Assembly: GCA_052426225.1 (NCBI GenBank)
Contig: JBNJNM010000008.1
Coordinates: 248,001 to 312,000 of the forward strand
Source: Zancudomyces culisetae HAW-14-8
Taxonomy: Eukaryota; Fungi; Kickxellomycota
Direction of reading: 5' to 3'
DNA length: 64,000 bases
Shown here: positions 9,209-34,304 of the stretch, one piece after another
Numbering within the stretch: the stretch's first letter is position 1
Layout of the letters: every line of letters starts with the position of its first letter
Notes under the pieces: model-generated
Seen by the model: the letters and a program-made list of their open reading frames with translations, nothing else
Told to the model about the DNA's origin: nothing
Database searches by the model: none
Translations under genes and position numbers: made by a program

Positions 9209-9667
9209 CTACCAGACCATAACGGCTACGACGACCCTGCCACCTGAGCCACCCACTGCAATCTTGGGAACTTCCTGATTGTCCATTCTGAAGTCTTCAA
9301 CGTTTAGACTATCAGATTCATCACGCTTATTGCCCATGTCCCCATTCGAGGATGAAGTGCGTTGTGTAGCCGACTTATCTTTCAGCCCTAGCCTATTTAA
9401 AAAACTCCAATATCTGTTGTGCTTCTTTGTTCTGGGGCTAGTACTTTCGGAGTTAGTGCTTTCGGGGTTAGCAGTTTCGGATTCAGTAGTTTCAGAGCTG
9501 TCTGACGAGTCGGCGTTGAGTTTAGCACCTCGAATATTTTGATTAATTCCTGGTAGTGCATTATTCATGACATTTCCTAGCCCTCCAAGCTCATTGTGGA
9601 GTTGCGAACTTGCTGAACATGAAATAAGCGATGCTGTTAATACAAAAACTGTGTATAGCTGCTTCAT
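9209..9667 (-). CDS. Secreted precursor peptide, DNQ family member 1 (152 aa)
   Basis: Signal peptide MKQLYTVFVLTASLISCSAS, Ser/Glu-rich spacer, KR site, then DESDSLNVEDFRMDNQEVPKIAVGGSGGRVVVAVMVW*. AAAATG start context. TATAAA about 150 bp upstream. Confidence 0.8.
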   Translation of the reverse strand: MKQLYTVFVLTASLISCSASSQLHNELGGLGNVMNNALPGINQNIRGAKLNADSSDSSETTESETANPESTNSESTSPRTKKHNRYWSFLNRLGLKDKSATQRTSSSNGDMGNKRDESDSLNVEDFRMDNQEVPKIAVGGSGGRVVVAVMVW

Positions 9668-11462
9668 TTTATTTTGGTGATGGTATTCAAACTTTTCGTT
9701 GTGTATATTATGTACTGGTGCACTGATTTAACTTGTAATGCTAGTGATGTGATAATCTTGGTGCGGTTCTTTTTTTTAATATTAAACTTTTGTCGTTAAC
9801 CATTGAAGGGGAAGGATATTTATATTGGTATTTAAATAAATTGAGTCTTATCCTAGTTACATGCAAAACAATTTTGAACAAGTATCATAAATAACTGCTA
9901 CAAATACTCTAAAGGCTCTAAAGTGGTAAAAGTACAACTATGTGTGTTAAAATGCCAATAAATCTGTATATTATGCAAAAATACGCCACTTTTATTCCCT
10001 GATAGATGACTGCATATATTTATGTATATTTTTCCAAGTACCCCCTATTCACAAGCTTGGAAGAAGGAGGAATCAATAGCTGAACCTCTTTATGCAATTT
10101 CAAATGCACAAGTCGTTGTTAACCCTCTAAAATGTATTTTAGATATCTTTTTAATTTTTTTTTGGCTTTTGAGTACAGTAACCTCTACCATTAAGATAGA
10201 AGAGTACTCCTACGTTGTGTGGGGTCAAATAGTTACACAAACCAAGCGTGTGAAATAGTAGGAGTAACAACTGCGTCTTTTAATCCCAATGAACCCGGAA
10301 TTTAGTTCGACTAGTTACGCTGGCATCAATTTTTTGATGGTATCTGGATTGGTATAGTAGCCAGAATCATGCAGTGTTATGTAGCTTTGGTATTTTGTAA
10401 GCGCATATGCTGGATAGCGAAAGTAGATAATAGGGTGATATTAGTTTTTTGTGGAGGCGTAGCATTTAGAAATTGAATAGCATAAAACATTCTATTTCAC
10501 TTGTTTCGCATTTATAGATTTGGCAGGAAAAACGGTGCAAAACAGGGGGAGGGAAGGAAGAGGAGGTGAAATACCATACCAATTTCTCTAATGCAAACCA
10601 TATGTTTATTCCCCTTGCCTTTTCACCTCCCTTTATGTATGGTACGACCACAAATAGCGCACTAAGTTTAATGTGATGGGACTTGGAATGCATTTTCACA
10701 GACTATTTGCACCAAAGTTCTAGCTGTTTTTCATTGTAACTAGTGTTGCACTTACGCATATACCGCATCCGGATATTTGATAGCTCAAGCGTGAATCTTT
10801 GCACTAACTAAAGACTTTCCTGCTAGGATTGGGGCTTTGCTGACGCAAATGTACACAGCTCAGGTGATATAGTTCATTGGCTACAGACTTTATATGCTTT
10901 CTTAGTCGCAATCAACCAATACTGTACATGTGTTTTTTATTGGTATACGAGCTGAGAAAAATATGTTTTACTAAAAGCATGGATATTACATGTCTTTACC
11001 ATTAGCCTTGTTTTCGAATCATTAAACCTCAAATAAATGGTTTAGACTCAACATCCGTTGCTGGATTCACAATAAAGCTTATTAGCTCTGTAAGCGATAA
11101 AATAAAATGGAAATGTTAATCGTCTTTACAAATCATAAGGGTCAAGGGTACCAGAAATCGTTTGTGACGTTAATTAGCGTGGATATAGCCTTATTTTTGT
11201 ACATTATTGATTATAAATGTAGTGTCGTGTGTTTCTAGCCAAAGATTACAAGTTGAGTAACACTATCGTTCATTTATCTTGCTATAAAAATAATAATCCA
11301 AAAAAAGGAAGGTGAGAGGTAGAAAGGGAAAGGAAGGGTAAATAAAGTTTCTTCTGCTTGGTACCAAAACACTTGTAAACCAAGTGTACGCACTTCCCCA
11401 ATATACCCTGGATGTAGTACAACCAGCTTGGTCTAATTTCTGCAAACACAGTTCGCTCCACT

Positions 11463-11503
11463 CCCTTACCCTTACCCTTACCCTTACCCTTACCCTTACC
11501 CTT
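11463..11503. repeat. (CCCTTA)6 hexamer microsatellite
   Basis: Perfect tandem CCCTTA units read directly, just downstream of the Yip1-domain gene. Confidence 0.9.
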
Positions 11504-11599
11504 TCTATATACTTTTCTTGTCAAAATAAAATTCAAACAAAATTAAATGATGTGGTATCTGTATTGCAGATCTATACCAATGTGAAAAAAATAAAAAAA

Positions 11600-12847
11600 T
11601 TAGTAACTATAGAATAAAAATTTCATGCCCAAACTAAAGGCTGCCAAGGAACTAATAACTATAATATTCAAAACGAGATTTGGTCTTGATTCTGTTTTGT
11701 TTGCTATCCTGCCCAAGTTTTGAAGCATAAATAGACATGATATTCCAAAGCCAATAGCGACACTAATCCATCTAACTAGAGGGTATTTTAGCATACAGGC
11801 CAACGAAACCAAGATCCAGACAGATGTGGAGTATCCATAGACAGATACCGCTTCTATCAATGTGCAGTCTAGCCCAAAATATTTACTGGTGAAGCTGAGA
11901 ATCACAGACATTATCCCAACATACATATACACAACAGCAAAGGCCAGGAAAAACATAGAAATATCATGTTCAACGGGTGTGCCATATACCAGCTGCACAA
12001 TGATTATGCTTAATCGGTAGGCCACAAATATAAAGTATATCACGCTTGTTGGAACCCAAAAAGGCCCTATTTGTTATTATGCCGATTGGTGTTATTGGTT
12101 TTTTGTAAAAAAAGTAGAGCGGTGAAATAAAAATAGTGAAGTAAGATATTACACGAAGATCCGATCACCATGGAACCGGCGGTAAAATATTAAATAAATA
12201 TACGTTCATAAGTATATTAGTGTTGATAGTTTACCCCAAAGATCAGGTTTTGCTGTTATGGCATCAAAAAACTCATTTTGTGGCATAATACTCATGACAA
12301 TTTTCTGAATAACATCTTTCGTGTCAACGTCAAAATATACCGACCAATATGATATGTTCCAAATGGAACCACCCTGCGTCGGTGTACTTGTCGCAACATT
12401 CACTGGATCTCTGCTACTTAGAGTCGAGACTGGACCTATTTTTACGAATGTTTTACGTTACTAAACTTACAAGATCTTGTTTGCACTGCTTTATAAAGCT
12501 TTGTTTTTATTAGATAAACATATCCATGTGTGTATTATATAGGAAAAATAAATTTAAAAACGCAGTATATTACCCCGAGTAGCGCCAAGATTAGGTTCAG
12601 TAGTATAATCTAGTTATAGGAATAAATTACATTGTTTACTATATTTTCCTTTCCACTAGTTTTTAAGCAAAGTGACAAACACAAATATTTACCTTGGAAT
12701 TCAAGCTGATTCTATTTGTAAACGTAGATATTTTACTATAAGTGACCAACCTTATTAATATACTTGAGTAATTATATGCAAAGATGCCTTTTTTTGTTTT
12801 ACCTCATCCACATCAATCACAATGTTATAATCGTTTTTTGCCTCCAT
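11600..12847 (-). CDS. Yip1-domain Golgi membrane protein (YIPF1/2-like), 5 exons including micro-exons
   Basis: Spliced translation MEAKNDYNIVIDVDE|NQLEFQ|DYTTEPNLGATR|GPV...WNISYWSVYFDVDTKDV...KPDLWG|PFWVPTSVIY...VSVYGYS.... YFDVDT, PDLxGPFW and YGYS are Yip1-family motifs, with several TM helices. Confidence 0.85.
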
Positions 12848-13611
12848 CGCTTCGAGTGTTTTTTTTTCCTCTATGGTACAATTAATACAATCTCGGGCAT
12901 AAATGTTTATTGCTAATTAATGAAAACGAATGAATAGTTGCAATGTTATTTCTACAGCTTTGCTGGGCTAAAATGAAAAAAAAATGAAAGAAAATATGTT
13001 TGGGTTACTGTTATGCTTTGTAATTTTCTCTACTCCAAATTTTGAATAAGTTAACCAATGGCCTGGTGTAAAATTTTACAAAGTAAAATTTCCCTAAAAC
13101 TTTACACCAATCAGTTCATTTTCTTTTATGGCAAACCTAGCTTCATTCTCAGCTTCGAAATTAAAGGACTGGGTAACGGGCACAGAAAAGGCGCCATTTA
13201 CTATTGTTATAAAGCCCAAAAGGTGACCGAGCTGATAGGAGAATTCTTACCAACTTATAGATATTAGGATAGCTTGATCATTTGTAGATACGATGGACAT
13301 TCTGGACACAAAGGTAGATTCGTTAACCATATTTTTGGCAAATAAATAGTCCAGTATTGAAAATGCTAAGCAACAATACAGTCGCATACTCCCCCTTAAG
13401 GCTACTGAATGAGTATTGTTGTGATGCATATATCATAGTGACAACGATATATAGTTATAGTGGAGTTAGGTTGAAAAATAAAACAAATTAGAAGAAACAT
13501 AGTTATACTAAGAGATTATCTTTTTTAACCAACACTTTATATTATCATTTAGCGATAAAACGCTAACAAGGACAAAATAAAAACAGCATTGTAAATTATT
13601 AGAAAAATTTC

Positions 13612-15558
13612 TTAGTCGGTAGCGAGATGTAGTATATCATTAAGGCTTTTGCCCAAAGTGGAAGAAAACAGTGAGATGTCGGTTTTCTTGTCACCTTCGG
13701 GAACTTTGTAGTTTTCCCATGTAGTTATAATGGCACGAGTACAGTTTTTATCCAAACCGTACCCAACGCCATAACCAGAAGGAACTACGGGTGCGAAGCC
13801 TCCCTGGAAGTCTCTTGCAGGAGAAACATTGCTAGTAGACAGCTCAAAGTACATTGACTTCAGATACCCAGGGTCGTTGAAAAGTGTAGCTTTTGCCAAC
13901 TCATCAGGGTTTGCTTGATCCAGCATACAACGCAAGCCCAATAAGTGTCTGTCTACACCATAGCCCGATCCGGCAGCCTTCATATACTCTGCGTGTACAC
14001 CTAATGCACCTATAAGAGACTCCATCTTTCGAGCGTTTGTAACCGAGGGGTTGTCAATTGCTTTAACAAACGCCAGTGATTCGTTGCTAGCCACTCTAAC
14101 ACACTCTGTTCTTCCACCTAAATAGCTGCGAGTTCCCGCAGCTTCATAGGTAGCAGTAGCTCTTCCATGAATACGATAGTATGTCAACTGAATTGCCATT
14201 TGCGCAAGCGAATCAGGACTTATTTGAGCTTTTTTAGCTGTCTCAGACCCTATCCCCTCTAGCTTAATATTCTTGAGATTAACATTGTTGGCAAATTTAA
14301 GGGTTTCTGCTTTGACTGCCTCCAACTTATCCAAAATGTCCTGGTTAATTTGCCACTTCAACAAAGCCGGTGGTGGTAAATCGGTACTTCCGGTTTTATG
14401 TAAAACACCCTTTTTTTCTTTTGCTAAAGCCTCCACAATAATCCTTCCAGTGGTAAGTGCATCGACTGGTGTGTGTTCACAATTTAGTCCCACATGTCCA
14501 TTGTTTAGTACAAGTAGTTCAATAGGCTTATCATACCATCGGTTTTCCCCATGTTTGGACTTCAAAAAGTATTGGGCACGTTTATCTATGTCATAGCTAT
14601 CATCCACGTCCATTTCTGTATCCAAGCTAACGGAAAATAGAGCTGTTTCGATTGTACGTAGGTTCTCTGTGTTTGCAGGCGAAATGTCTATCAACCCCTG
14701 ACGCACAGTTGCCCATACATCTCTGTTTGCTGCTGTAAATATACCAATCGCTGCCTGTTTTTGTGTATGGCTGTTCTCAACTTGAGATATTAGTTGATTC
14801 AACTGGTTATAAATGCCGTCGTCAGACACCCTGCTTCCTTGTTGATCGTACACATTTACTTTAAATATCTGATCCTTGTATATTACTGTAATATGTCTTT
14901 CAGCACAAGGATATGAAGAAACGATTTCATCGCACTGTAGCTTGGGTATCCGGGAACAACCAAATTGACGCTTGAATTGATCCATGCAAAAGGGTTTCCC
15001 ATTTCTTTGATATTCGGGCTCGACTTTTCCTTGGTTCAATTTATCATTAAAGTCCAGCAGATGATTAATTAACACGCTAGCCCTTTGTAGCTGGAATGCT
15101 GTATGAACACCCTTCTTTACTTCGCTTGGCTTTGGCATTTGAGCACCTGGAGGTTCAGCAATGGTTGCATACCAATTGACATTCAGATAACAAGGTTCTC
15201 TATATTCCAGATATGCCTTATTGAGCCATATGTTCTCCAGCCAACTCTTCTTCTGGCTCTTTGAATACTCAAATAATCGCTGTTGCAAAATAGGACCCAG
15301 TCCACCATTGTTGCTAATAAAGCTGTTAACTGCATGAGTTGAGTCTCGAAATTCATCTTTTGTTTGGAGTGGCTCGAGAGTCTTCAAATACCGTTCGGCT
15401 GTCTGCTTTAAAGTCGGAATAGGTAGCTTTGGTAAGAGGTCCTGGTTGTCGAAAGTACCAACCGTGGCCCCAGTTGAATGCTTTCTATTTCTTAATTCCG
15501 AATTTAAGGCTCGCTTATTTGCGGGAAATCTGGCTATTCCGGACCTCAGGGTGAGCAT
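13612..15558 (-). CDS. Choline/carnitine O-acyltransferase (carnitine acetyltransferase-like)
   Basis: LPKLPIPTL, NRWYDKP, catalytic EHTPVDA, TYEAAGTR..GGRTE, GVDRHLLGL and FAPVVPSGYGVGY motifs. The Arg-rich N-terminus resembles a mitochondrial presequence. Confidence 0.92.
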   Translation of the reverse strand: MLTLRSGIARFPANKRALNSELRNRKHSTGATVGTFDNQDLLPKLPIPTLKQTAERYLKTLEPLQTKDEFRDSTHAVNSFISNNGGLGPILQQRLFEYSKSQKKSWLENIWLNKAYLEYREPCYLNVNWYATIAEPPGAQMPKPSEVKKGVHTAFQLQRASVLINHLLDFNDKLNQGKVEPEYQRNGKPFCMDQFKRQFGCSRIPKLQCDEIVSSYPCAERHITVIYKDQIFKVNVYDQQGSRVSDDGIYNQLNQLISQVENSHTQKQAAIGIFTAANRDVWATVRQGLIDISPANTENLRTIETALFSVSLDTEMDVDDSYDIDKRAQYFLKSKHGENRWYDKPIELLVLNNGHVGLNCEHTPVDALTTGRIIVEALAKEKKGVLHKTGSTDLPPPALLKWQINQDILDKLEAVKAETLKFANNVNLKNIKLEGIGSETAKKAQISPDSLAQMAIQLTYYRIHGRATATYEAAGTRSYLGGRTECVRVASNESLAFVKAIDNPSVTNARKMESLIGALGVHAEYMKAAGSGYGVDRHLLGLRCMLDQANPDELAKATLFNDPGYLKSMYFELSTSNVSPARDFQGGFAPVVPSGYGVGYGLDKNCTRAIITTWENYKVPEGDKKTDISLFSSTLGKSLNDILHLATD

Positions 15559-17055
15559 TGTTATTGTTTAGTGTTGTGCCTCCAAATACTTGTAGATGCT
15601 ATTAGTATCTGCTGTTATTCGTAGAGCTAAAAACCTTCTACCTTTTTTTCCGAGTAATATAGTAGATATTTTGTATGTATTGAGATATAACGTTTGAGGT
15701 TATTGTGATTAGTAAAAAAATAAAAACAGGGCTTTGGCATTGCATTTCAATTGCTAATCAAAATCCCCCCCCCCCCCCCCCAAAGCTGAAATATGGAGCA
15801 AATAAAAACAAGTACAAAAAAAATGCATTTCGGAGCTAGGAAAACATTGGAGTTGAATAAGTTAAGCTGAGTCTATCAAAGCTAATCAAAATGTGAATCC
15901 AGAGGCGTTACATATTCAATTTGGTGGGAGGTTAGGCTTATTTGCTAACTGGTATGTGCTTGTGAAAGTTTTTTTTTATCTTTTCAACAAAACAAAAAAA
16001 ATGCAATAATATTAACATTAGTGGAGTAAATACAAACAGTATGTTTCATGTTTGAATTTTACCCAGGATTAGGCTTGCATGATAAAAAATCAACAATTAG
16101 TGATCTGAGTGTGAAACTTTCAGGAAGCGAAATGCTTAAATAATACACTATCTAGTGTAGCTAGAAGCACGAGAGCACTAAAGTGTACAAGACGTAGTAA
16201 TGTGTGCCTGTCCTGCATTTTAACCATTAAACCTGGTTCTTTTGTCAACACAACTGAGGTTTGAGGTGAGGCACTCCCTTTTATACAAACTTTTCGCGAA
16301 ACCTTTGCGCGGGGTTTGGTTTTGCACTCTGTTTCACAATGATAAATAAAAAAAAGTATTCATCAAGTAAAGAGCAATCAAACGGAAAAGTAGAAAATAT
16401 CGATGCATCCAAAGGTTTCAAGAGTATGAAAAGGAGGGGTGGGGCTGTGTAGCTAACCAAAATTTTTCAGAAGTAGAACGGTGATACAAAGTACAAGGTT
16501 GGACGATCACCCTTCCTCTAGTACAAGATGTAGTCGGATAATATTTGTTGTTATTTCCAAAACTATGAGTCCCCAAATACTTCTCCATTTGAGAGAGAGG
16601 GGAGGGGAGTGTGTAACCCCCTTTCAACGCACTTTTAATGCACGTTGGTAGTATACACGAACAAGATGTCTAGTTTTCGAAGCCAATACGCTACTTTCAT
16701 TCAATTATAATCCTTCATACACTAATATACGGCGTCCTAAATTGCTAACAAATAAGAGCCAGGGCAAAGTAAGTATTTAAGATAGCTTTTGGCCAGAAAG
16801 TTTGGGTGAGTAATCATATGCCATCGACAATAGTGGTAAATATGGAACTGGGTAGAATACAAGTTTGTTCGAATCACTTTATTCATAATTATGTGGATAT
16901 CCATGTAACACTAATGAAATGATACTAATACAGACCAGGCAAATGTTTGTGTCATAGAATGTTAAAACACTACTAAACAATAGTATGTTGGCATCAAAAG
17001 AGATTTTTCTTAGAAAAGTACACGCAAATGTAAGGGTAAAAGAAAAAAAAACAAT

Positions 17056-19746
17056 TCAACTGTAGCCACCAGACTTGATGACCTTGATACTTTCCAAAAG
17101 GTTTTTTTCACTAGGAAATCTTACACGTTTACCAGACTCCTTATTTCCGCCAGATTTTGGTTTATAGGGTTTTGCGGATAAGAGCGTTGAAAACGAGTCG
17201 CCCGAGTCGTAAGTGCTGTGAGAATTTATAGATTTAATCGACTTGCGCAACTTGTCAGCTGTAGTGCTGGATCGAAACGAAAAGGAAGTAGTAGTACTGG
17301 TAGCGCCAGTAGCACCATTGAAAGGTAAAGAAGAAAAGTTTTGGTTTTCCAGGTTTCGGTGAAAGGGAATAGGTGCAAAGGAAAATGTGTTGTTTTCAGA
17401 GTCCCGAACGGTAGGGTTGGAAGAGTAGTGATTCATATTTGGAAATGTAACAGAAGAAGGGCTAGATGGGTTGTTGTACCTGGAGATAGCCTTTTTCCTG
17501 CGCAAAGTGGTGTTAAAAGAGCTATATGGTTTCTTCCTGTTATTATCATTGGGTGAATTATGGCGGTGGGCTATGGGCAACGAGCGATTCTTGTTGTATA
17601 AAAAGCCAGAGGTCTGCGCATGGCCGTTAGGTGAATGGTTTTGTTGGTATCTTTGCGGGGTTTGAGGAGGGGTGGTAAAGCTGGAGTCAGGAACAGACGT
17701 ATTCATCAGCGTGTTTCTCATGAGTTCAATCTGGCCGAACCGTTCAGAGATTTCCTCCAACCTTGTGTCGATCCTCTGATAGCTAGAGCTGGAAGAAAGA
17801 GAAGGCGGGGTGGAATGAGAAAGCGAGGGAGAAGGGCTTCCGTACTCATCCAAGGCCGATGAATCGCTGGTGCTGCTTAGTGAAATCGAATCGCTCTCGT
17901 CTTCAAAATCACTGTTGAATTCATCATTGTCTAAAGATACGTTATCTTGCATTGTGCCCAGACGCTTAGATTTGTTTATAGCAGCGGTTTTTCGCCGCAG
18001 CAAGACACCATCAGTGTTGGAACCAGCAACACTAAGTAGCTGGGCTTCAAGTAGTCTGGTAGTCTCGTAATAGCTATATATTCCTACACTAACTGCCACA
18101 AAGCATATTGAATCAGCCGAGTTGCTAAGGGTCTCTACGATATCTTCGTCAAGCTTGAGCAATTCAAAGCGCTTTACTTCTCCAAATTTAAAGTTGGTGT
18201 TGTTGGCAACGAGGCAATTGTTCTGCAAATTTGGATGCCGTGGAAATTCAAGCTGTACACGAACGTTGGTGTTTACCTTTTCAATGTTTTGAAATCGCTC
18301 GTCCTCAAGCAATTCTACTTCAATGGTAATCAAGGCATCGCCATCATCACTTCTACTCCGTCTTATGGTCAACCCGAACTCGCATCCGTAGGTCTTGATA
18401 CTGTAATTTTCTATTTTTAAGTGTTCTGGTTCCTTTCCTAGCATATGTATTCGATTAACTGTAATCTTTACGTTTGATGGTTTAGGCTCTTCGCATCGAA
18501 TAGTCTCCTTAAACTTTTCGTTGCTTTTACTCAACAAGTATTGTTTGGTTCCAATCATTCCACTCATGTTCTGATACTTATCCTTTAGAGATATTGCTAA
18601 TGCTTTCCCTCCAACTATTGCCTGGGTTCTAGTATAGCTCTCCATTTGGTCCTGCGAAAAGTTAACCAGTTGGTGCATTTCAACACATTCACTCTCAAGC
18701 TGTTCAACCGCCCTCCTTATTTGCCGCTCTACTTTTGTATGCTTTTTCTTTATTACTTTTATCTGCTCATCAAGCCTTCGCCTGCATTTATTAATTATAC
18801 AATTATATTCCTCCTTCAAATCCTCGCCCTTTAGACGGATATTTTTAACTTCGCTGTCAACCTGGGCCCCAAGCTCCAAACACTTTTCTATCTCCTCATC
18901 CACCATGTCATATACTTCGTCATACTTTACTGCTGCTGGGCTAAGGTCGTGTTTTTTATGTAATTCCTGGTTGTTTTTACAGATTTCGCACACACCAAGT
19001 TCACAATCACTGCACCAGTAGAGTGCCTTTTGGGTTCCATGCATTTTGCAGGTTTCACCAAAGAGCATCACCTGGATCTTTTTCTCCAAATCTTCTGTCC
19101 ACACACCCCTAGAGTTTCGCCTGACTGTTACCAAATCACCTAATGTGCTTGCTTCCTCTTCCTCTTCCTCTTCCTCGTCGTCCTCGTCGTCGTTCTCCTC
19201 CTCTTCTTCCTCTTCCTCACACTCATCCTCACCCTTTCCCTCAACTACGGCTCCCGTATCTTTACTCCTTCGTTTTCCTATCTGTTCTGTTCTCTCTTCT
19301 CCTTCCTTCTTTTCAGATCCTCCCTCGGTTCTTGTTTCGAGTCTTATTTTAGTTTCAGTCCCAGTCCCAGTCCCAGTCCCAGTTCCATCTGCTTTTACAA
19401 CGTCTTTCTTAAATAGATCTTTGTTGCTTTCACTTTCTCGTGTATTATCTTCCTTGGTTGATCCCAGTACAATATGACTCTTTCGATTTTCTGTTGATAC
19501 ATCAGCCCTCTTGTGGGGTATTGATTCCCGCGGCCGTGTGTGTTCTGAAAGCAGTTCTTTGTTTTTTATATTCGACTCGGGCTCCATGTTTTTGATTTGA
19601 ATAAATTTTTTTTCGCTCTCTTCGTGAAGAAATATTTCAAATTCTTCAATCTCAAATTCCGAATCGCTTTCAATTTCTTCCTTGATATTTTTTTCCTTGC
19701 TAAACATATGCTTACTAAAACTTTTAAAGAATAAAATTTTTTTCAT
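17056..19746 (-). CDS. B-box zinc finger / coiled-coil protein with possible MATH-like domain and Ser-rich tail
   Basis: 896-aa ORF. B-box CKMHGTQKALYWCSDCELGVCEICKNNQELHKKH, followed by a helical coiled-coil, a beta-rich segment (YGCEFGLTI...ITIEVELL...VRVQL), and C-terminal KRVRF. Confidence 0.75.
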   Translation of the reverse strand: MKKILFFKSFSKHMFSKEKNIKEEIESDSEFEIEEFEIFLHEESEKKFIQIKNMEPESNIKNKELLSEHTRPRESIPHKRADVSTENRKSHIVLGSTKEDNTRESESNKDLFKKDVVKADGTGTGTGTGTETKIRLETRTEGGSEKKEGEERTEQIGKRRSKDTGAVVEGKGEDECEEEEEEEENDDEDDEEEEEEEEASTLGDLVTVRRNSRGVWTEDLEKKIQVMLFGETCKMHGTQKALYWCSDCELGVCEICKNNQELHKKHDLSPAAVKYDEVYDMVDEEIEKCLELGAQVDSEVKNIRLKGEDLKEEYNCIINKCRRRLDEQIKVIKKKHTKVERQIRRAVEQLESECVEMHQLVNFSQDQMESYTRTQAIVGGKALAISLKDKYQNMSGMIGTKQYLLSKSNEKFKETIRCEEPKPSNVKITVNRIHMLGKEPEHLKIENYSIKTYGCEFGLTIRRSRSDDGDALITIEVELLEDERFQNIEKVNTNVRVQLEFPRHPNLQNNCLVANNTNFKFGEVKRFELLKLDEDIVETLSNSADSICFVAVSVGIYSYYETTRLLEAQLLSVAGSNTDGVLLRRKTAAINKSKRLGTMQDNVSLDNDEFNSDFEDESDSISLSSTSDSSALDEYGSPSPSLSHSTPPSLSSSSSYQRIDTRLEEISERFGQIELMRNTLMNTSVPDSSFTTPPQTPQRYQQNHSPNGHAQTSGFLYNKNRSLPIAHRHNSPNDNNRKKPYSSFNTTLRRKKAISRYNNPSSPSSVTFPNMNHYSSNPTVRDSENNTFSFAPIPFHRNLENQNFSSLPFNGATGATSTTTSFSFRSSTTADKLRKSIKSINSHSTYDSGDSFSTLLSAKPYKPKSGGNKESGKRVRFPSEKNLLESIKVIKSGGYS

Positions 19747-21070: not shown

Positions 21071-21110
21071 CCTTTTACCACCTTTTACCGCTTTTTACCG
21101 CTTTTTACCG
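21071..21110. repeat. 10-bp tandem repeat (CYTTTTACCR)4
   Basis: CCTTTTACCA CCTTTTACCG CTTTTTACCG CTTTTTACCG, upstream of RPS16. Confidence 0.85.
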
Positions 21111-21598: not shown

Positions 21599-21619
21599 CA
21601 TTTATATTAAATATCAAAC

Positions 21620-23060: not shown

Positions 23061-24160
23061 AAGCGTTTCTGGAACGAGGTCGATAGTCATTGCGGTCGCT
23101 GGGTATGGAGGTGAAATGTTCGGCATGTCTGAAGCAAGGGTAAAACCGATACAGCAAGCCGTGGACAACGCGATAAGAATAGCCATGGGAGTGGGCAGAT
23201 CGACATGTATGAGGAGATTGCGAGAAGAATTAAATATAACAGATATTTACAGTAGAACGACCAGAGCTAGAGACAGAGCATTCCACAAATGGAGTGGCAT
23301 GAAAACATGGATAGCAGATTTAATACAGAACCCCTTCAAACACTCGAAGGACACTTGGGTCACAGGGTACACAAGGTGGTCTAACAGATTCAACAGGATC
23401 AAGATTGATAATGTACCAACCGGAGAGATAAGAAAAACCAAAGAGACACTCGAGATAAACAACAGACTGAAAGACAAGTCGAATATTACAAAGTGGATAA
23501 AGGAAGTTGGAGCAGGCCGACAAAGGAACTGGGTCGACTTACAAGCGGCCTTTCCACAGTACATGAAACACATTCTTTTCGTAGGTCGAATTCGAATAGG
23601 CCAATTTTGGACCGCCACGAGATTAGCAAATTCGGGTTTTATAGATCCAGATTACAAAGCCAAATGTCCGTTCTGTAAGAAAGAAGAAAAAGAAACAGTT
23701 GAACATTACCTATTAGATTGCAGCAGATGGGACGAAATTAGGAATGATTTACTTACCGAATTTATAGATTTTTATAGTTCTTTTTTATCTAGCACGATTT
23801 CCGAGTGTGTTGAGCTTCGCAGGAAAATCGTGGGTAAACTCCTGGGGGAGGAGTTAAAGCTCAAACTACCTGGGATTCTTCGGGATCCAAACGCCACTTG
23901 CGTTAGAGCAGTGGTTTCCACAGCCCGGTTTCTTAACGAGACCTTTTTACCTCGCTACCTAGTGTTGAAAGACATTAGTGTAGTCCCACTCCCCTTGAAC
24001 CAATGCCCATCGGGTACGGAGACTCTAGAGAGTCGAAGGGGGATAGGATGAGTTTAGATTATAGATTGTTTTTAATTGTTTATAGGAACTGTTTATTTTC
24101 TAAATAAATTTTTTTTTCTACCGAAAAAAAAAAAAAAAAAAAAAAAGCGTTTCTGGAACG
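23061..24160 (+). mobile_element. 5'-truncated non-LTR retrotransposon (LINE) with poly(A) tail and 16-bp TSD
   Basis: AAGCGTTTCTGGAACG occurs at 23061-23076 and again at 24145-24160. The body (23077-24144) ends with an AATAAA signal near 24103 and an A-tract from 24124. An uninterrupted reading frame to 24051 encodes the C-terminal part of ORF2 with a CCHC knuckle (CPFCKKEEKETVEHYLLDC). Confidence 0.93.
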
Positions 24161-24600
24161 CATAACCTCATTCTGCGTGGCAGCTTTTTTTTTTCGACAC
24201 CCCTATGCAAACCTTATTATTGATTTCCAGCAATTCTGGCATAATTTTGCCATCCACTAAAAAATCATAGAGAAATCGAATAAATAAATCAGAGTTTAAA
24301 ATGCCATTTTTTATGAATGCAGGGGGAGCCTCTATGCGATCAAAGCTTTGTTTGGTTGGATTAATGCCTATGATATATAAGTATTGACTGGACTTTCTGG
24401 ATCAATACCTTGTAATTTGGGTATAATAGTTTAGCTGATGGTACCTTCAACTGTATATAATCCCTAGTGCCCTCCTTCCGTTTGGAATCCATACTATCTA
24501 TTCCATGTTTATCATTCAAAATTTCTACTTATATTTTATCCATTGCTTTTCGTTTAGTCTAAATCCAGTCATAGCTTGCTAAAATTAAACCAAAACAAAA

Positions 24601-24813
24601 ATGAAAGCCGCAAACAATGTGTTTATCTTTATCGTTTCGCTGGTCGTCACCAGTGCATACGTCGTAAACCTTTCACAAAAAAGGGATCTAGAGCCCGCAT
24701 TTGATCATGGTGTATCAGATATCGAAAACACTAATATGGATAACCAAGAGGACCTCAAAGTGAAAGTAGGAAATGCTCCTGGTAAGCCCAAAAACTTCCC
24801 AATCTTCATCTAA
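24601..24813 (+). CDS. Secreted precursor peptide, DNQ family member 2 (70 aa)
   Basis: Signal peptide MKAANNVFIFIVSLVVTSA, KR site, then DLEPAFDHGVSDIENTNMDNQEDLKVKVGNAPGKPKNFPIFI*. AAAATG context. TATATAA near 24454. Confidence 0.8.
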   Translation: MKAANNVFIFIVSLVVTSAYVVNLSQKRDLEPAFDHGVSDIENTNMDNQEDLKVKVGNAPGKPKNFPIFI

Positions 24814-25376
24814 GAGTCAATGAAAAGGATATAGGAGAATGGATTAGCAAATGTTAGATGAGAGTAGGGTGGATATTTTTATAAAATCCGAAGGTCGCTT
24901 TCGCATATACAAACATAATACTATGTAAACCCGTATAAGCACATGGCGAACTTTAATGGCATGAACCACCATGGATTATTCAAGTTATCCCTTTATCTCC
25001 CTATCTCCCCCATCACTGTATCTCGTTTATACTCACATCCGGTATTCCGTTTATAGCTTCATTACAACAATTTTAGTCAATAAGCATAGTTTCATTTATT
25101 TGATATTGTTAAAAAAAAACTCTAATTTATAGTAATAGTGTACAAAAATTCGTTTAAACACTTTTTTTGTCTAGAGTGTTCATAATTTGTTTATATCCCC
25201 ACATGACAAACATCGCTAGTGGGGATGTTTGCCCCTAAATAAATTGTACCTGATTCCTTAATCTATATACCGTCAATTAAAATACCCTACAATTGAATGT
25301 TATACAATATTATCCTACGAGTATCATATCTACAAAAAATAACGTCTAAATAAGCAAATTCAAATTCAAATTAAAA

Positions 25377-26171
25377 TTATTTCCTCTTTTTCTTTGATTT
25401 CCTTGAAGTCAGGAATTCATCCAAATAAGAAGAAAACCGTTGTTTCTTTTTTTTATTGGCATGTACATCAACCTGGTTCCTTTGTGTTTCATTGTTGCTA
25501 TGAAGTTTGTCAACACCTATCTGAGAATCCCCTATTACTGTAGGGTCTGTATTTTCCAAACCAACACTGGTTCCACCGACAGCTAGGATATGAGTTTTTG
25601 GTGGATCATCTAAACTGGTTCCACTATTGTGTTTTGTGTTGGTAAAGTTGGTCTTTTTAACAAATTCCGTGTACCTGCTCTCACCCACATATTCCTCCTC
25701 TTTATTCTTTATCGATGTAACCTCCATCTTGCTTGTATTTTGTGCTTTCTTTTTGTTGGACCTTAATTGCTCCTGCAAATTGTTTAACTTTTTATCCTGT
25801 GATCCTCTCATTAACCGATTTCTTAGATCCAACTCCTTTCTTGTCAACCCATAGATTCCTGTCTTTGTTGATCCATAATCAAACCTTGCACCCAGCCCGA
25901 GCCTAAATTTATTTTAGAATTCATTAAAAAACGATACTCAAAGAGAAACTATTTCTTTTTGAAAGAAGTAAAAAAAACATTACCTTGGAGGACGAGTAAA
26001 ATTTGATAGCTTTTTGTCATTTTCATCTTCGGAATCAGAAGATTCATTGAACTTATCCTCGCCAAAAAGAGAATCTACAATTCTTTCAACACTATTTGCT
26101 TGTAACTTCAGCTCCTCCTCAAACTTTTGGGCCGTTATGGTACTCTCATCCTCTGGTACTGAATCCTTCAT
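25377..26171 (-). CDS. Basic, probably nuclear/nucleolar protein with RPPRLGLGA motif (DUF3245-like), 2 exons
   Basis: Intron 25983..25903 joins the two track ORFs to give ...FTRPPR|LGLGARFDY.... The Lys-rich C-terminus SRKSKKKRK resembles an NLS. The family assignment is from recall of the motif and is unverified. Confidence 0.65.
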
Positions 26172-27603
26172 TTTTCCTAATCAAACACCTAATTATACTT
26201 TTTTTGCATGTCTTATTTTTCTTTTGATCATTTTTCGATTCATTTTTCTCCAGAAAAAAAAAGCATGCCAATTAAATCGAGGAAAGAAAAAATTTTTCCT
26301 TCTGAAATATCCTCCTCACCTCCCTCCTCCCAGAAAAAAATAGAAATTGTATCACAAGTGGTGTTAGGTATGACCAACATATTATTACCTTTTTGCATTT
26401 CATTTTTCAAAAAGCATTTTTTTCAAGTACTAATGTAAACACTAGTACCAAGGAGGTGAGAAAGAACTAATGAATATATTCTTGGTTTAGTTTTGGTTAA
26501 ATTCTTTCGCTTGATGCTAGTATATTCACCTGTCTTATATCGCTAATAAAAAGAAAACTCCTGTTCATGTTGAACACCTAAAACATCAGAGACATGTTTT
26601 TCTTTAAAGTTGACCAATATGAATACTACAATCTTTATTTTTTTTACACGTCCAAACCATGAGGTGGTGCGACCTATACGATAATAAAATTGTATATTTA
26701 TGATTTTCATTTGAGAGAGTGGGCTATCGTAGAAATCGAGAGTGAATCTATACGCAAAGTTTAGCATAAATTCTTGGCAAATAGCAAGGTGTCCAGGAGT
26801 TTATTATTTTCAGAAATGTGTCTTGAGTTTATGACTCCATAACAACAAAATGTGCTAATATATGTACCCTTCCCCTTCCTCCTCCCCTCTCTCTTCTTCT
26901 TTCCTTTTTTTTCTTTCTTCCCTTCCTCCACCACTAGTAGTGAGTATGATTAAACTGTATTGTATTTCTTATCCAACCCGGTGTGCGTAACACATCTTAT
27001 TGGCAATATCTACCATATTAGGAGATTGAAAATGTACGGCCCTTTTTCTTATCAGATAAAGAAATTTTCTCCTTCTTAACCTATCCCATCTCTTCCTCTG
27101 CTCCTTACAAATTGTCATAGCTATATTATGTATACTTGTAACAATATTTACAAATACTCATGGTTAACTTCCCCCATTCAAGAGAACGTACTATAATACA
27201 CATCAATAGTCTATAAAAACACCAACAAAAATAATGAGTGTGCAAATCACTTTTTTTTATTTCTGGTGATTGTTATTTCTACAAACCCCAACTTTTATTT
27301 GTTTTTTATTTTCCAAACAATGTGGATCCTGACTATAAATTACTCTCCCCTCCCACGAAAGAAAAAGCAAAAACAAAACAAAAAAGAAAAGGATACTAAA
27401 AGTTATAAGTGTATGTAAAAGGTATTTTAATATACAATATCTTTCAAGAAATAGATATAAAGCATAAACCTACTCTTCAAATATTGACACCATCCTCTGC
27501 TTTTATTACCAGTGTTATATCTATACCAAGTACTTTCTCTAAAACAAATAAGTTCAAACTAGTAGCAGCAACCTAACAACACACTACTAAAACAATACCA
27601 AAA

Positions 27604-28986
27604 ATGAACAAAGTAGTAAAAGTGGTAGTTATAAGCTTGGTGCTTGATATACTTGCTTTTACCACAATCTTACCATTACTGCCGAAAACTCTTCAGCTCC
27701 TGAGGCAAAACAACGATGTGGTGCTAGACAGAACGCTCGAAGTCATGGGTACCATACGAGGATACCAATACAAGATAAAAAGTCTTTTTGGCAATGCAAA
27801 CGTTGTGGGAGAGTACGAGATGATGAAGAATAACGATGGGGCAAACATAGTGTTGCTGGGCGGTCTTTTAGGCTCGCTATATTCTATCCTGCAGTGCGTA
27901 GTGGCACCATTATATGGGAGATTGGTGGACAGGTTTGGACGTCGAAGAGTGCTTCTAGTTTCGATGTTGGGAAATATTGCGGGTTCACTGGTATGGATGT
28001 ATTCACACAAGTTTAGCTTGTTCTTACTAGCAAGAGTGATTTCGGGAATATCAGAGGCAAATATGCAAATATCCACATGCATCATCGCTGACGTTAGTGA
28101 GCCAGGAAAACGAACAAAAGAGATGGCACTAGTTGGGATGGCATTTTCTCTAGGCTTCACCATTGGACCAGCAATGGGTGCATTCCTTGGAAGAGTAAAA
28201 ACTACCAAACCGTATGCACCTTTCGGGGTGGCTGCAATGTTCTCGACCATATTTTTGGTAATTGAAACTGTATACATGTACTTTTGCTTGCCAGAAACAA
28301 AAAAAGAAATGGTAGATTGTACACAAGTCAATAAGATTAAGAAGACCGACTCAGTCCAAAAATCGGAAGAAAAAGTAAAAGAAAAGAAAAATATAAGCGC
28401 AGATAAAACAAGTGGAACAAATAAACGATTGCAAAGGATATACTTTGTCTACATGTTTGTTTTTAGTGGAATGGAGTATACGCTGACTTTTTTGATGCAT
28501 AACATTTTCAGCTACACAAATGAGCAACAGGGGAAGCTGTTAGGAACAATAGGGTTGATCACGGCAACCATACAGGGATCATATGTTAGAAGGACAAAGT
28601 TCACGAACAAAGCATTATGCATCCAGGGGATGCTGGGCTGCATTATTGGGATGGTTGGCGTCGCGAGCACGGTTGCGTTGAAAACAAAAGATGTCAATGG
28701 AGAGTATCACCCACACAAGCTGTCACTGTACACGGCGATTATTGGGTTCAGTGTAGCTTCAGGGATTGTCACAAGCTGTATGAACTCTATTGTATCTGGC
28801 CTGGCTGGGAGCCAAGATCTAGGAGAGAAGCTAGGAAGTTTCCGGGCTGCAGGCCAGCTTGGGAGAGCTTTTGGACCGGGATTTGCTAGCTTCTTATATT
28901 GGCTATTTGGGCCGATAGTGTGTTACATGTTTGGGGCAGCGACAGTGGGGGTTGTTTTACTGAGATTCACCCAGGTTCATTATTAA
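27604..28986 (+). CDS. MFS transporter (TetA/MFSD10-like)
   Basis: Motif A GRLVDRFGRRRV, antiporter-type GFTIGPAMG, C-terminal GQLGRAFGP, and about 11-12 hydrophobic helices. Confidence 0.9.
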   Translation: MNKVVKVVVISLVLDILAFTTILPLLPKTLQLLRQNNDVVLDRTLEVMGTIRGYQYKIKSLFGNANVVGEYEMMKNNDGANIVLLGGLLGSLYSILQCVVAPLYGRLVDRFGRRRVLLVSMLGNIAGSLVWMYSHKFSLFLLARVISGISEANMQISTCIIADVSEPGKRTKEMALVGMAFSLGFTIGPAMGAFLGRVKTTKPYAPFGVAAMFSTIFLVIETVYMYFCLPETKKEMVDCTQVNKIKKTDSVQKSEEKVKEKKNISADKTSGTNKRLQRIYFVYMFVFSGMEYTLTFLMHNIFSYTNEQQGKLLGTIGLITATIQGSYVRRTKFTNKALCIQGMLGCIIGMVGVASTVALKTKDVNGEYHPHKLSLYTAIIGFSVASGIVTSCMNSIVSGLAGSQDLGEKLGSFRAAGQLGRAFGPGFASFLYWLFGPIVCYMFGAATVGVVLLRFTQVHY

Positions 28987-30721
28987 GAATGAAACAGCCT
29001 GGATGCATCCAAAACTATTGGCGATTTTGGCGTTTTTGGTTGCGGTTGTGGCGTTTGTGAAGCAGACAAGGCGTGTTGAGACGACTTTAGTGACTTTTTC
29101 AGCTCAGCAAGAACCTGACGCTCATAGCTAAGTGTTTCATCGCCCATTCGCCACAACAGTGATGAAAACGTTTTATCGTGCATTAGTTTATATCTTATTA
29201 GGTCAGATTGAAGTGAAGAGTTGACCTTGAGTGCCTGACTCTTTCTGAGGTCCTTTGCCTTTTGTGCTCTTTCCATCGACTTGAGAGTCTCGTCAACCCT
29301 TTCCGGGACTATTGTGCTGCTTGAACCCAGTATCGCTACCGCTTGTCTTTTGCGCTCCAGATTTTCAATGCTATGTAGATAATCTTCAAATATCTTTTTT
29401 CTGTTTCCTAAACTCATTTTAATACCCGCGCTTTCTCTCTCCGCCTCCCCTATATAGTATACGAATGGGCTGGCTATGTGTTGTGTCTTTTTGCCGTTAA
29501 TAATCCCTTCTGAAAAGATGGCTTTCCCGAGGCTTTCCAAACTTTGCTCAACGTCGTTATTTGTTCCTATGTTTGCTAGTGACCTCAGCTGGGCCCCTAA
29601 CTCTGCCTGCATTTTGCAGTATTGATTTTTTATCTGCACATGTTGCACTTGTAGCTGCCGGATCTTGTTGAATATCTTTGCCTTTTCCTCGTACCCCTTG
29701 CGCTGTTTTTCAAAATACTCATCCATTTTTTCGCTGTTTTTCACATCATCCTCATAAGTAACATTCAATCCATGCAACTTTTTCGTCTTTCCTCCACCCC
29801 ACCCACCAAATATACCCATTCCACCACCTCTGTTACTTGCTCCACCACTTTCCGTGTCTGCTTCAACACTTATTTTTTCCCCCTCTATGTTTTCTATTAT
29901 TGCATTAAACTATAAATGTACGCATTTATTCATTTGTCTGTTCAGTAAAACTTGTTTATGTTATTCGCCATTTGCCACCATAGAGCTTTTTTTCTGACAA
30001 CATGCGAATTATATGATGGAAAAGTAAGACATATACTTAACTGCAAAGGGTGCCTCAACAAATTTAACAACCTCCTTATCATTTCCCACCTCTTCCACTG
30101 AAGTCATCCAGTCAAGCCAACCTTGCACTCGCGTTTTAATTGCAGCCTCGTTTTCTACTGTTATCTGCTGACCGATCTTTGTACTTCCTCTTGGAAAAGC
30201 GAATAGTAGCTTTTCTGGATATGTGTAAATTAAATATTTACTTAATCTTTCAAATTCTACCTGAGTTCTTTCTACTCCGAAGTATCTCTTTTTTCTAAAT
30301 CCAGGATAATTCGTCTACTCAAATATTTATAATCACATCCTTTTGTAAGTATTTGGACATCTCAATAAAGACAACAAATATATTTATAGATGTTTTACAT
30401 TCACTTCAAGCCTGTATATGGGAATATTTTTGTTTCTTATAATGTAGTCGCGGAGGATAATTCTCAACTTTAGTTTATTCTCTGTCTCTGAGCCACCGCC
30501 TAGATCACTATTCAATTTATTTTTTTTGAAATCCTTTGTTAGAATGCTCATTTGAACTGATAGCTCAACTAAAACCAACTTTTGTTGGAAAGTAAGGTAA
30601 AATTATTAATTTTATTAATCCATTAGCTCATTTCTACCTACCTTGTATTTTGCACGTCAGTATTATCCCCTCTGCTCATCGAGGCATCTCTTTCATGCTG
30701 TTTTCCATCCTCGTGCTCCAT
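28983..30721 (-). CDS. VPS17: PX-BAR sorting nexin, Vps17-like retromer subunit, about 4 exons
   Basis: Spliced N-terminus MEHEDGKQ...|...PIYRLEVN|TNYPGFRKKRYFGVERTQVEFERLSKYLIYTYPE resembles the Vps17 PX domain. A helical BAR-like region follows (AVAILGSSSTIVPERVDETL). Confidence 0.7.
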
Positions 30722-31648
30722 ATTGTACAGAATATTTGAAAGTCAGTTTTTTATTTAACAAGTTAACCAACGAACCTATTTAATAAAAACCCAGATGTTT
30801 TGTAGTTAGTTAAAAATCGGCCACAATTATTATAAAATGCAAAACACTTTGTTCCTCATATCTATTTCACCTCCTCCCCCCAAACTCAACCACTTTCGAA
30901 CAGAAAAGTCTGCTTGTTTTAGGCGAAGAATTTTGCCAATATTTTTTCTTTTTTTCCCAATATATTGTTTATACTTGGCATTTTCCCTTGTTTTGTGCAC
31001 TATAACCACCTACTGAATAGAAAAATGTAAAATGTAAAATGTAAAGTGCGAAGTGCGAAGTGCAAAAATAAAAAGTTGCAAAAGGGAGGAAGTGTCACCA
31101 ATTGTCAGCAAGCACTAAAGGTAAAACCAAAGATATTTAACATCACAAAAACCCCCTTCAAAGCTGTGTACCACCCCCCCACCTATACACACACACATAC
31201 GCATAACATTTCCACTTTTTTAATACTTTAACCTCCTCAGAGCCAACTTTTGTTGTTCTGGAGTATCAATTTTCTTTACAAGTCACATTATGTTATTTTT
31301 CTGGTCATTGAATTTTACAAAAAAAAAAGCAACAACAGTAGCTGCATATTATACCAGGAGCGTGAGGTCGCACTTTCAGGTAAATACATCCCCTGAACAA
31401 AACTAGCGGGATCTGGCATATTAGTACGTGTCTTACATCAGCTACACCATTTTCTTTTGTGTTCTGTTCGCTCGGATACAGAAAGACTGAGTTTATTTAA
31501 ACGCTCATTATAGTATTGGCAAAAGAAAACCATTAAATAGCTATCATGCATAAAAAAAAGACACTCATTTTAAAAATGTCAAAAATAAATTTGTTGTCTT
31601 GCACATGTTTATAGTAGTATACATATCCCTCACCCAGTACAATAAATC

Positions 31649-32125
31649 TTATTTTGTAACGGTTGCGGGCTGTGGTGGGGGGATTGACTCAAAGTTTGGA
31701 GGGTAGCCGTGTGCCCTAGCACCATCGTTTGCGTTGTACGCACCGTTGTAGGGTGGCTGTTGGGTTTGGAACTCAATGTAGCACTTGTTGCTTGGGTATA
31801 TCCCATTGATTATGTAAAACGGATCTGTTCCGGGGTGTTTGAAGAATGCTATCTTTTTCTTGCTATCCCTCAAAAGACTTGTAATTGTATGTATGTCGTA
31901 GATAAGAAATACTGTATTGAGTATCAGGAACAACCAGTTGTAGATATTATCCCTGCCACTTATAATATTTGTTAAGGATATAACTGCAAACGCAAGGAAC
32001 ACCGTTCCTGTAATTGAGAACAACAGTAAAAGCAGTATTGTTTTTTTCCTTACTTTGCCTATTGCCCTTGTTCTGTACGACTGTATTATCTCGGGTGGAT
32101 ATGTCTGGTGTGAAATAGGCAGCAT
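31649..32125 (-). CDS. Orphan two-TM membrane protein, member A (158 aa), with Pro/Tyr-rich tail
   Basis: Two hydrophobic helices (about aa 29-55 and 61-81), the motif PGTDPFYIINGIYP, and a QPPY/YPP-containing tail. Aligns without gaps to the 38474-38952 product. Confidence 0.78.
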   Translation of the reverse strand: MLPISHQTYPPEIIQSYRTRAIGKVRKKTILLLLLFSITGTVFLAFAVISLTNIISGRDNIYNWLFLILNTVFLIYDIHTITSLLRDSKKKIAFFKHPGTDPFYIINGIYPSNKCYIEFQTQQPPYNGAYNANDGARAHGYPPNFESIPPPQPATVTK

Positions 32126-34058
32126 TTTGTCGTTTTTCTACGCTACAGCTATAATCTCTATTGCTGTCTTTGTAATTGGTCTTTTTTGCTTTTTGTGAAT
32201 ATTGTTTTTACCTGTTTGCGTATTTCGTTAGAATATCTAATACTTTACCACCCTTGTTTGTTATTTACTTGTTTCTTTTCTTTCCTATCTTGTGTCACTT
32301 ATTTCATAATAGAAGGTAATATACACCAAAGGTTCTTAGAATAGAAGATAATTAGTAGCTTTTTAATACTATAGATACCATATATGACCTTTCTAAGTTA
32401 TAAACCCCAATATTTTCAAACTTGAAGTTTATTGAGTCTTAAACTTGCTAGTATAAAACCAAAATAAGTTGATAGCTGGTTTTCATAGATTATTGGTACT
32501 TGTTCTCCCTATAAGTATGATCAATAAAGGCTGCTATAGCTATAAATCTTTTCCACAAACATCTTAAATATCGCTGTTTGCCACATCCATTCCCCTCAAA
32601 TATAACAATCATTATTTCGTATTATTAATTTTGTAAAGTAAAAGTTATAAAAAAAAACAATGTATTATTACATGTGTTATATTATTTCTAGACAATTGGC
32701 ATTGTAATATTTACATTGACAAATACTGTTTTGTTTTAGAAAAAAAGCGAATGCTGAAACCACTCACTGTCAAACCTAAACAAATAGCAGCACAATACAT
32801 TGTAAAACAAATAATCTATGGAACAGAAAATTGAAACAAAAGCTAGTCAAGATTTTTGGAGATTCACCAAGAGTTAACAATTACCATTTTTTGTGAATCT
32901 CAACAATAATACCACAAAGAACCACCTTTAAACCCAAATCAAAATGCGTTTGAAAGTATCACGCTATAGAATTAACAAGATTGGTATACTGAAGTCGTTA
33001 GCCAAAGCACGCATAGAGTGTTGCACACATTCCCTTTCCCATTGAGTATTAACCCATAGTTTAGTATACTCACCGGCTAAATTATCTGTAACATCTGGTA
33101 CCATACATCCTCTTTTCTATACCACTCCTGTGTTGCATAATCACTTTATTTTCTCTTTACGAGCTCCGCACGATTTATTTAACGCAGCGAGTAGTACTTT
33201 ATGTGTAGAAATTAAATTCACCAAAATATGAAGAAATGGAGGCGAGGAAAATAAACCATAAATAATACTGAATATATGGTTAATATTGCGTAAAACACCA
33301 ATTAAGAATAGTAACTACTTCTTCCTTTTCTCTGCCTCTTCCCTCAAGTTAAAACTTCCGATGATATTATAGGCATATTTTGGTAATACACACGCTTTTG
33401 ATATGGTCCTAAACAAAAAGTCTGAAACTTTGAGAATGTTCGCAGCAGCTACATAAACCAGCGACAAAGCTACTCTAGGAATGTAAAGGAATTTTATTTA
33501 GGTTTAAATAAACAAGCTTATGATTTTTAAACGAAAATTTCCGTCCACTACAAAGAGCTTCGTTTTCTTTATTGAGATAGAAGCAAGTGAATTTGATATT
33601 ACTGGTTTTATCAGGAAATCAGGTTTTATATGGATAGTTACTGCTAATGGTGAAACTGCTAAATACCTGACAAAAACGATTCTTCCTTAGTTATATAATG
33701 GTTTTGTCAGGCTTTGGTTGGTTAGGATTGTGTTTATTAGATTAGGTGATGGTATTGTATATCAATAAAATATTAGTTTTTTCTTTTCGTATAAAAATCT
33801 GAGGTGAAGATAAATGGGTTTCCAAGGAAAATTAATATTATTCCTGTGGCAAAGCAACTGTGGACAATCGATTACCACCAGAAAAAAGTATTTTAATAAC
33901 AAGTGTATATGATATATAAACGGCAGGGTTGGTTTTTTGGTAGCACAATACTACTGTGTGTAGATGTCGATATGAGTGTGGTATTAAATTATATTAACTG
34001 ATATTATCAGTATCCGGCACTCCTTAGTTTATCTCTGGTTACATCGCCCTCTTTTGTG

Positions 34059-34304
34059 TTAAAATATGACGGGATGGTTTATAATAGTTGTTGCGCCTCC
34101 TGGCACTTTTATCTTGATACCATCTTGATTATCTAGATTAAGGCTATTAATGCTTAGTGCAATATTGTTGTGCTCAACTTGTTTAGCATTGCCGTTATCA
34201 TTATTTTGGGGATTTGCGTGTTCATTTTGTTGATGACTTATTGGATATGCATTGCTAACAGCCAATGCAGCGAAAAAGATAAATATTCTGTTTACGGTCT
34301 TCAT
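34059..34304 (-). CDS. Secreted precursor peptide, DNQ family member 3 (81 aa)
   Basis: Signal peptide MKTVNRIFIFFAALAVSNA (similar to member 2), Asn/Gln-rich spacer, then SINSLNLDNQDGIKIKVPGGATTIINHPVIF*. TATATAAAA about 130 bp upstream. Confidence 0.8.
   Translation of the reverse strand: MKTVNRIFIFFAALAVSNAYPISHQQNEHANPQNNDNGNAKQVEHNNIALSINSLNLDNQDGIKIKVPGGATTIINHPVIF

Follow-up and report, generated by a model that had tools for sequence, protein, structure and literature searches.

A three-member orphan family of small, plausibly secreted proteins with a fixed-register C-terminal module in the insect-gut fungus Zancudomyces culisetae

Small orphan families of secreted proteins are common in fungal genomes. 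Such taxonomically restricted small secreted proteins (SSPs) are short, begin with an N-terminal signal peptide, carry no Pfam domain, have no relatives outside their own lineage and multiply by local duplication, and most of those of the effector type bear cysteines. A second group of short secretory products comprises the Kex2-processed repeat proteins (alpha-factor, Ustilago Rep1, Ece1/candidalysin), in which several similar units lie between dibasic sites (KR, RR or KK) (PMC7329392). A third group is formed by the dikaritin-type precursors of peptides synthesized by ribosomes and modified after translation (RiPPs), as for ustiloxin, phomopsin and asperipin. Here we analyse three small genes in a stretch of 64,000 nucleotides (nt) of the genome of Zancudomyces culisetae HAW-14-8 (assembly GCA_052426225.1, contig JBNJNM010000008.1, positions 248,001 to 312,000 of the forward strand), which we call the window. 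This fungus, one of the Harpellales, inhabits the hindgut of larval mosquitoes and other larval dipterans, where it is attached, and it serves as a model for insect-gut symbionts in disease-vector mosquitoes. The three proteins, with their predicted signal peptides, resemble the first group in all of the respects listed except the cysteines and, judged by their sequences, their family belongs to it. They differ from most effector-type SSPs in having no cysteine in the mature protein, in numbering only three copies and in lying amid housekeeping genes instead of at chromosome ends, and from taxonomically restricted SSPs in general in ending with a fixed-register D-N-Q-x3-K-[IV]-x-V module (x, any residue). 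The reading that we favour, and which we consider probable without being sure of it, is that these are three real paralogous genes, forming an orphan family of small secreted proteins in which the conserved C-terminal module is the working part.

By translation, the open reading frame (ORF) of member 1 (9209..9667, minus strand) yields 152 amino acids (aa), that of member 2 (24601..24813, plus strand) 70 aa and that of member 3 (34059..34304, minus strand) 81 aa. Each protein begins with a predicted signal peptide and ends with a conserved C-terminal module of 33 residues, and it is the part in between that varies. In member 1 this part is a Ser/Thr/Glu-rich disordered spacer followed by Lys-Arg at residues 114-115, in member 2 it contains Lys-Arg at residues 27-28, and in member 3 it is an Asn/Gln/His-rich spacer without Lys-Arg. 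The module of member 1 (9212..9310, minus strand) was delimited by gapless alignment, a register test and recovery with a profile, those of member 2 (24712..24810, plus strand) and member 3 (34062..34160, minus strand) by gapless alignment and a DNA pattern match. It consists, in member 1, of the D-N-Q-x3-K-[IV]-x-V core, then a Gly-rich stretch and then a Val-rich end. Across the 33 residues the three members align without a gap, the residues D, N, Q, K and V being invariant, and in every member the D of D-N-Q is placed exactly 24 residues from the end of the protein. A preliminary description of this DNA, made from the letters alone, had reported the three ORFs, the gapless tail and this spacing, and all of this is borne out; moreover, the D-N-Q register is absent from every other window ORF of at least 40 aa that starts with ATG (182 ORFs examined).

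Several comparisons bear on the question whether this likeness reflects common descent. Compared in register, the tail of member 1 scores +76 (BLOSUM62) against those of members 2 and 3, the next best window ORF scoring -13. When a profile is derived solely from the two other tails, those of members 2 and 3, it places member 1 first among the 2,716 six-frame segments of the window, with E = 0.0026, a value that holds within the window and that, scaled to the whole genome, is not significant by itself. When the mature parts are compared without their signal peptides in Smith-Waterman alignments, all three pairs score higher than almost all of 2,000 shuffles, with z scores of 5.0-6.5. Members 2 and 3 at full length reach z = 13.7 against shuffles, and they retrieve each other genome-wide with E ~0.005 and 35% identity over the full length. 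The signal regions, too, resemble one another above shuffles, with z = 7.5 for member 2 against member 3. At the level of DNA, similarity among the three loci is limited to approximately 45 nt around the motif, and no similarity was found between the flanking DNA of the three loci. On the strength of these sequence comparisons, the three ORFs are homologous genes, and their likeness is not a matter of chance.

The manner in which the tail has diverged shows where conservation acts. Each of the five residues that do not vary (D, N, Q, K and V) is written with different synonymous codons among the paralogues, and synonymous sites of the tail are saturated (proportion of synonymous differences, pS, 0.7-0.8), while the corresponding proportion of non-synonymous differences (pN) in the motif core is 0.28-0.43. 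Since synonymous codons vary to saturation while the motif residues stay, conservation lies at the amino-acid level, and the duplications are old. Over the last 13 codons, pN among the paralogues rises to 0.56-0.75, which is near random, and there is no insertion or deletion across the last 33 codons. As read from these alignments, the last 13 residues are thus a segment whose length and hydrophobic character are kept and whose sequence is not. This end had been called hypervariable in the preliminary description, which is apt for the old paralogues but not for the two strains compared below, in which the last 13 residues are identical. The codon usage of the annotated frame is the best of the six frames in each of the three genes.

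The second strain is represented by assembly GCA_001969505.1, whose contig LSSK01000018.1 (73 kb) shares approximately 99% DNA identity with the window. In that assembly, members 1 and 3 had been called as genes independently. Member 1 is annotated on LSSK01000018.1 with an identical protein sequence and shows no strain difference in 459 nt; it lies in a difference-free stretch from 9079 to 9720 (642 nt), the surroundings of which differ at 0.77%. The single strain difference in member 2, at 24609, is synonymous. The DNA of member 2 is present in GCA_001969505.1 but not among its called genes, so that public protein collections lack this member. Member 3 has its counterpart on the same contig as member 1, in the hypothetical protein AX774_g363 of Z. 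culisetae, with 96% identity.

How large is the family? In the genome of 27.1 Mb in 25 contigs, searches with the tail profile and with the single proteins found exactly three copies. The preliminary description had proposed a search for many more in the same register as a test of the family, and its outcome is negative. It had also called the family dispersed; all three loci lie within 25 kb of one contig. The DNA pattern D-N-Q-x3-K-x17-stop has 16 matches in the genome against 8 in the control, and a signal-peptide ORF accompanies it only in the three members. A DNA pattern for the signal peptide recovers members 2 and 3 only, its matches with mismatches being fewer than in the control, and inspection of nine ATG-starting matches to the signal pattern revealed no further family member. 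An ORF at 8921-9106 (61 aa) was considered as a decayed tandem relative and set aside, being recovered by neither tail profile and carrying 4 strain differences in 186 nt. As a separate observation, an unrelated ORF of 83 aa with a signal-peptide-like start and several cysteines, on the plus strand from G000:C11:1487105 onward, is a candidate secreted protein.

Outside this species, the collections searched returned no relative. A HMMER search of 1.84 billion representative proteins found none outside Z. culisetae and returned the fungus's own two annotated members; two bacterial-type repeat proteins that also appeared in it (P0003, P0004) were rejected, since their scores add up nine weak repeats. 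Among 5.8 billion proteins, word-index searches likewise gave no relative outside Z. culisetae, and in JGI metagenome contigs none of 227 pattern matches was confirmed. The three members have no match in Pfam. The best scores in the ESM Atlas (0.77-0.79, for DIM and UL22A) fall within the range obtained with shuffled sequences and were rejected as relatives. In the literature, the AX774 locus tags led to a 2018 comparative-genomics paper alone, whose passages on secreted proteins give genome-wide counts and not these genes. To judge from these searches, the family is undescribed and so far found in Z. culisetae only, and in this the preliminary description, which had not recognized the motif from any named family, proved right.

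With respect to the location of the products, a predicted signal peptide of 19 residues is found in member 1 (9611..9667, minus strand; cleavage after Ala19 by the -3/-1 rule), in member 2 (24601..24657, plus strand; hydrophobic core score 3.44) and in member 3 (34248..34304, minus strand; hydrophobic core score 3.08). All three have a hydrophobic core and an Ala at position -1 after residue 19, the signal peptides having been called by hydrophobicity and the -3/-1 rule alone. From these features, the three proteins are plausibly secreted. None of them has a cysteine after the predicted signal peptide, as had been described, and each of the three mature parts has a net charge of -2.

Several points weigh against the reading of three selected, secreted paralogues. 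The prediction of secretion comes from rules applied by hand and not from a trained predictor. Restriction to Z. culisetae means that no annotated relative was found, a statement that depends on the annotated proteins of other Harpellales. The strain differences in member 3 are three non-synonymous changes (Q45H, N61D, V62G) and no synonymous one, and two of the three fall directly after D-N-Q. Between the strains, the difference is 0.44% for the three genes pooled, 0.38% for long ORFs and 0.88% for the remainder of the region, and the pooled rate of the three genes is not significantly different from the non-coding rate. Strain polymorphism is too sparse to prove constraint, and it is compatible with it. 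One might ask whether the ORFs are non-functional, either chance frames or decaying relics, with the common block serving as a DNA- or RNA-level element. The changes in member 3, the missing annotation of member 2 in the older assembly and the disorder predicted for the proteins would all suit such a view. However, the conserved residues have been kept through synonymous codon changes, the DNA outside the motif is dissimilar among the loci, and none of the three frames is interrupted; their signal peptides match, they stop in the same register, and codon usage favours the annotated frame. We regard non-functional ORFs as the least probable of the explanations considered here.

If the three genes are functional paralogues, as we favour, they would have arisen by an old local duplication within 25 kb, and each would encode a small acidic protein that has no cysteine in its mature part and is largely disordered. 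This protein would enter the endoplasmic reticulum through the 19-residue signal peptide and would then be secreted to the fungal wall or the lumen of the insect gut. Its working part would be the C-terminal module kept by selection, in which [IV]-x3-N-[ML]-D-N-Q-[ED]-x2-K-[IV]-x-V is followed by a stretch rich in Gly/Pro and then by a hydrophobic end whose length is fixed, the spacer ahead of the module being a freely evolving linker. The module would most likely serve as a short linear motif for binding or assembly and would depend on a free C-terminus at a constant distance. Members 1 and 2 may in addition be trimmed by Kex2, which would not be a trait of the family as a whole.

Structure prediction offers little in the way of a fold. 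In two runs of AlphaFold2, with shallow alignments of 3-4 sequences, the predicted local distance difference test (pLDDT) reached 54-56, no strands were modelled and helix appeared only at the signal peptide (in member 3, residues 3-17). The Atlas model of member 1 has a pLDDT of 0.51. The three proteins are predicted by these models to be largely disordered. Residue propensities in the three tails follow a strand-turn-strand order, with a beta propensity (Pbeta) of 1.2 at K-[IV]-x-V, a turn propensity (Pturn) of 1.25-1.53 at the Gly/Pro stretch and a Pbeta of 1.05-1.41 at the end. The beta-hairpin that had been proposed for this segment draws on such propensities and finds no support in the AlphaFold2 models, which show no strands and are of low confidence. 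When the tail profile was compared with the PDB, the sole match was to 4rzk, over 17 residues and with E = 0.26, in the beta3-turn-beta4 region of a small heat-shock protein. The likeness consists of N-x-E-D-[IL]-K-[IV]-K-V followed by a Gly/Asn turn, but the three members have no HSP20 match in Pfam, and we treat it as analogy, not homology.

These data also bear on the idea that the proteins are a surface or adhesive material, whose beta-prone hydrophobic tails would self-assemble, like amyloid-like repellents, in the wall matrix or in the holdfast glue that fixes the fungus to the cuticle of the gut. Strand-turn-strand propensities are present in all three tails, the sub-threshold likeness to 4rzk suggests a sequence compatible with a hairpin, and attachment in Harpellales does depend on a glue that they secrete (PMC9866270). 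Against this stand the strandless AlphaFold2 models, the end of member 2, which is broken by Pro and Lys and is weakly hydrophobic, and the small number of copies and the lack of repeats, in which the family is unlike known structural and adhesive proteins. An adhesive role of this kind seems improbable to us.

A further explanation, and the one towards which the preliminary description leaned, is that the proteins are precursors of processed and possibly modified peptides, with the D-N-Q block as the site recognized by a protease or modifying enzyme and the variable last 13-24 residues as the bioactive core that is released, to serve as signal, toxin or antimicrobial. The succession of signal peptide, spacer, conserved block and diverged end would suit such precursors. 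As that description had noted, Lys-Arg is followed by Asp in members 1 and 2 and in these only, at one site each, and member 1 has a Lys-Lys pair in addition. A Kex2/furin-type convertase is encoded in the genome (P_proprotein, PF01483, at G000:C15:1061245-1061517 in an open frame of 854 aa, E = 2.1e-19), and for this reason trimming of members 1 and 2 by Kex2 is possible. In sharing a predicted signal peptide, a Lys-Arg ahead of the conserved part (members 1 and 2) and a convertase in the genome, the family resembles the Kex2-processed repeat proteins. It differs from them in that no internal repeats were found in the three proteins, which contain at most one Lys-Arg-Asp each, and in that the site has no constant position, the distance from Lys-Arg to the motif being different in members 1 and 2. 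Member 3 lacks a dibasic site in both strains, and trimming, if it occurs, would not be family-wide.

The comparison with dikaritin-type RiPPs leads in the same direction. A predicted signal peptide is shared, and the layout may be taken as a conserved part followed by a variable one, but the repeated Kex2-flanked core is missing here, and the window contains no gene for UstYa/DUF3328, a tyrosinase or a methyltransferase. A Pfam scan of the window ORFs of at least 150 aa, along with a few shorter ones, found no tailoring enzyme. UstYa/DUF3328 (PF11807) has no match in the genome either, in a search that had no positive control and by which its absence is not proven. The identity of the supposed core between the strains and a family of only three members also speak against precursors. 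On balance, we consider peptide precursors unlikely, if less so than an adhesive. It may be speculated in addition that the invariant Q and K, four residues apart, would permit a cross-link. In its boldest form, this would make D-N-Q-x3-K a recognition or cross-linking site, whether for a protease, for a transglutaminase-like Gln-Lys link or for another enzyme, and the family a new class of fungal gut-active peptides, with diverged hydrophobic ends that would be aimed at different targets, of the host or of bacteria, in the gut of the mosquito; we see this as a long shot, more doubtful than an adhesive role and only marginally less so than the view that the ORFs are non-functional.

Other classes of surface proteins can be set beside the family as well. 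At the C-terminus of glycosylphosphatidylinositol (GPI)-anchored wall proteins, an omega site is followed by a polar spacer and then by a hydrophobic tail of approximately 12-20 residues. In the present proteins, by contrast, the uncharged C-terminal runs comprise approximately 4-9 residues, with Pro, Asn or His breaking up those of members 2 and 3. Hydrophobins and cysteine-rich effector-type SSPs are set apart by the cysteine pattern of the mature protein, which is absent from the three members. What remains, as it stands, is an ordinary small orphan family of three members and of modest importance. Because it is predicted to be secreted, appears restricted to Z. culisetae and appears to be kept by selection, the family is a reasonable candidate for the interface between fungus and gut, and its motif may serve as an entry point for work with antibodies, tags or peptide assays.

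Upstream of the genes, the start context is AAAATG in all three, and TATA-like elements are found at 9818..9824 (minus strand), 157 nt upstream of the ATG of member 1, at 24454..24460 (plus strand), 147 nt upstream of that of member 2, and, as two overlapping copies, at 34430..34438 (minus strand), 134 and 132 nt upstream of that of member 3. These starts and boxes agree with the first account, as do the signal-peptide-like N-termini, within the hand rules by which the latter were called. The chance of finding TATA[AT]A[AT] in a random stretch of 60 nt is 0.06, and no promoter motif common to the three genes beyond chance was found.

The neighbours of the family in the window are, by sequence, housekeeping genes. 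They encode a DEAD-box helicase, a protein disulfide isomerase, a Yip1-like protein, a carnitine acyltransferase, a B-box protein and an MFS transporter, and further Dus, Brix, a kinase, BOP1, an RNase III-like protein and TAF6. A gene of the ribosomal S9 family is also nearby, as seen in the matching stretch of the other strain. Member 3 is flanked by two ORFs on the minus strand (31649-32125 and 38641-38952), which each contain two hydrophobic segments and have no match in Pfam; no functional link between these ORFs and the three family genes was found.

The comparison of the two strains further revealed some differences in the surroundings of the genes. At 23077-24144, the window carries a 5'-truncated insertion resembling a long interspersed nuclear element (LINE), with a zf-RVT match (E = 3e-4), a terminal poly(A) run at approximately 24125-24146 and a target-site duplication of 15 nt around it (23062-23076 and 24146-24160). 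The insertion site lies approximately 450 nt upstream of member 2. As it is absent from GCA_001969505.1, the insertion is polymorphic and young. Conversely, approximately 580 nt of the other strain's contig (L009, 13135-13717) have no counterpart at window positions ~31171-31180, which marks an inter-strain insertion or deletion. Finally, the window contains at 27604-28986 (plus strand) a clear ORF for an MFS transporter (Pfam E = 5e-42), over which the older assembly lists only a gene of 185 aa on the opposite strand (27693-28331, minus strand) that looks mis-annotated.

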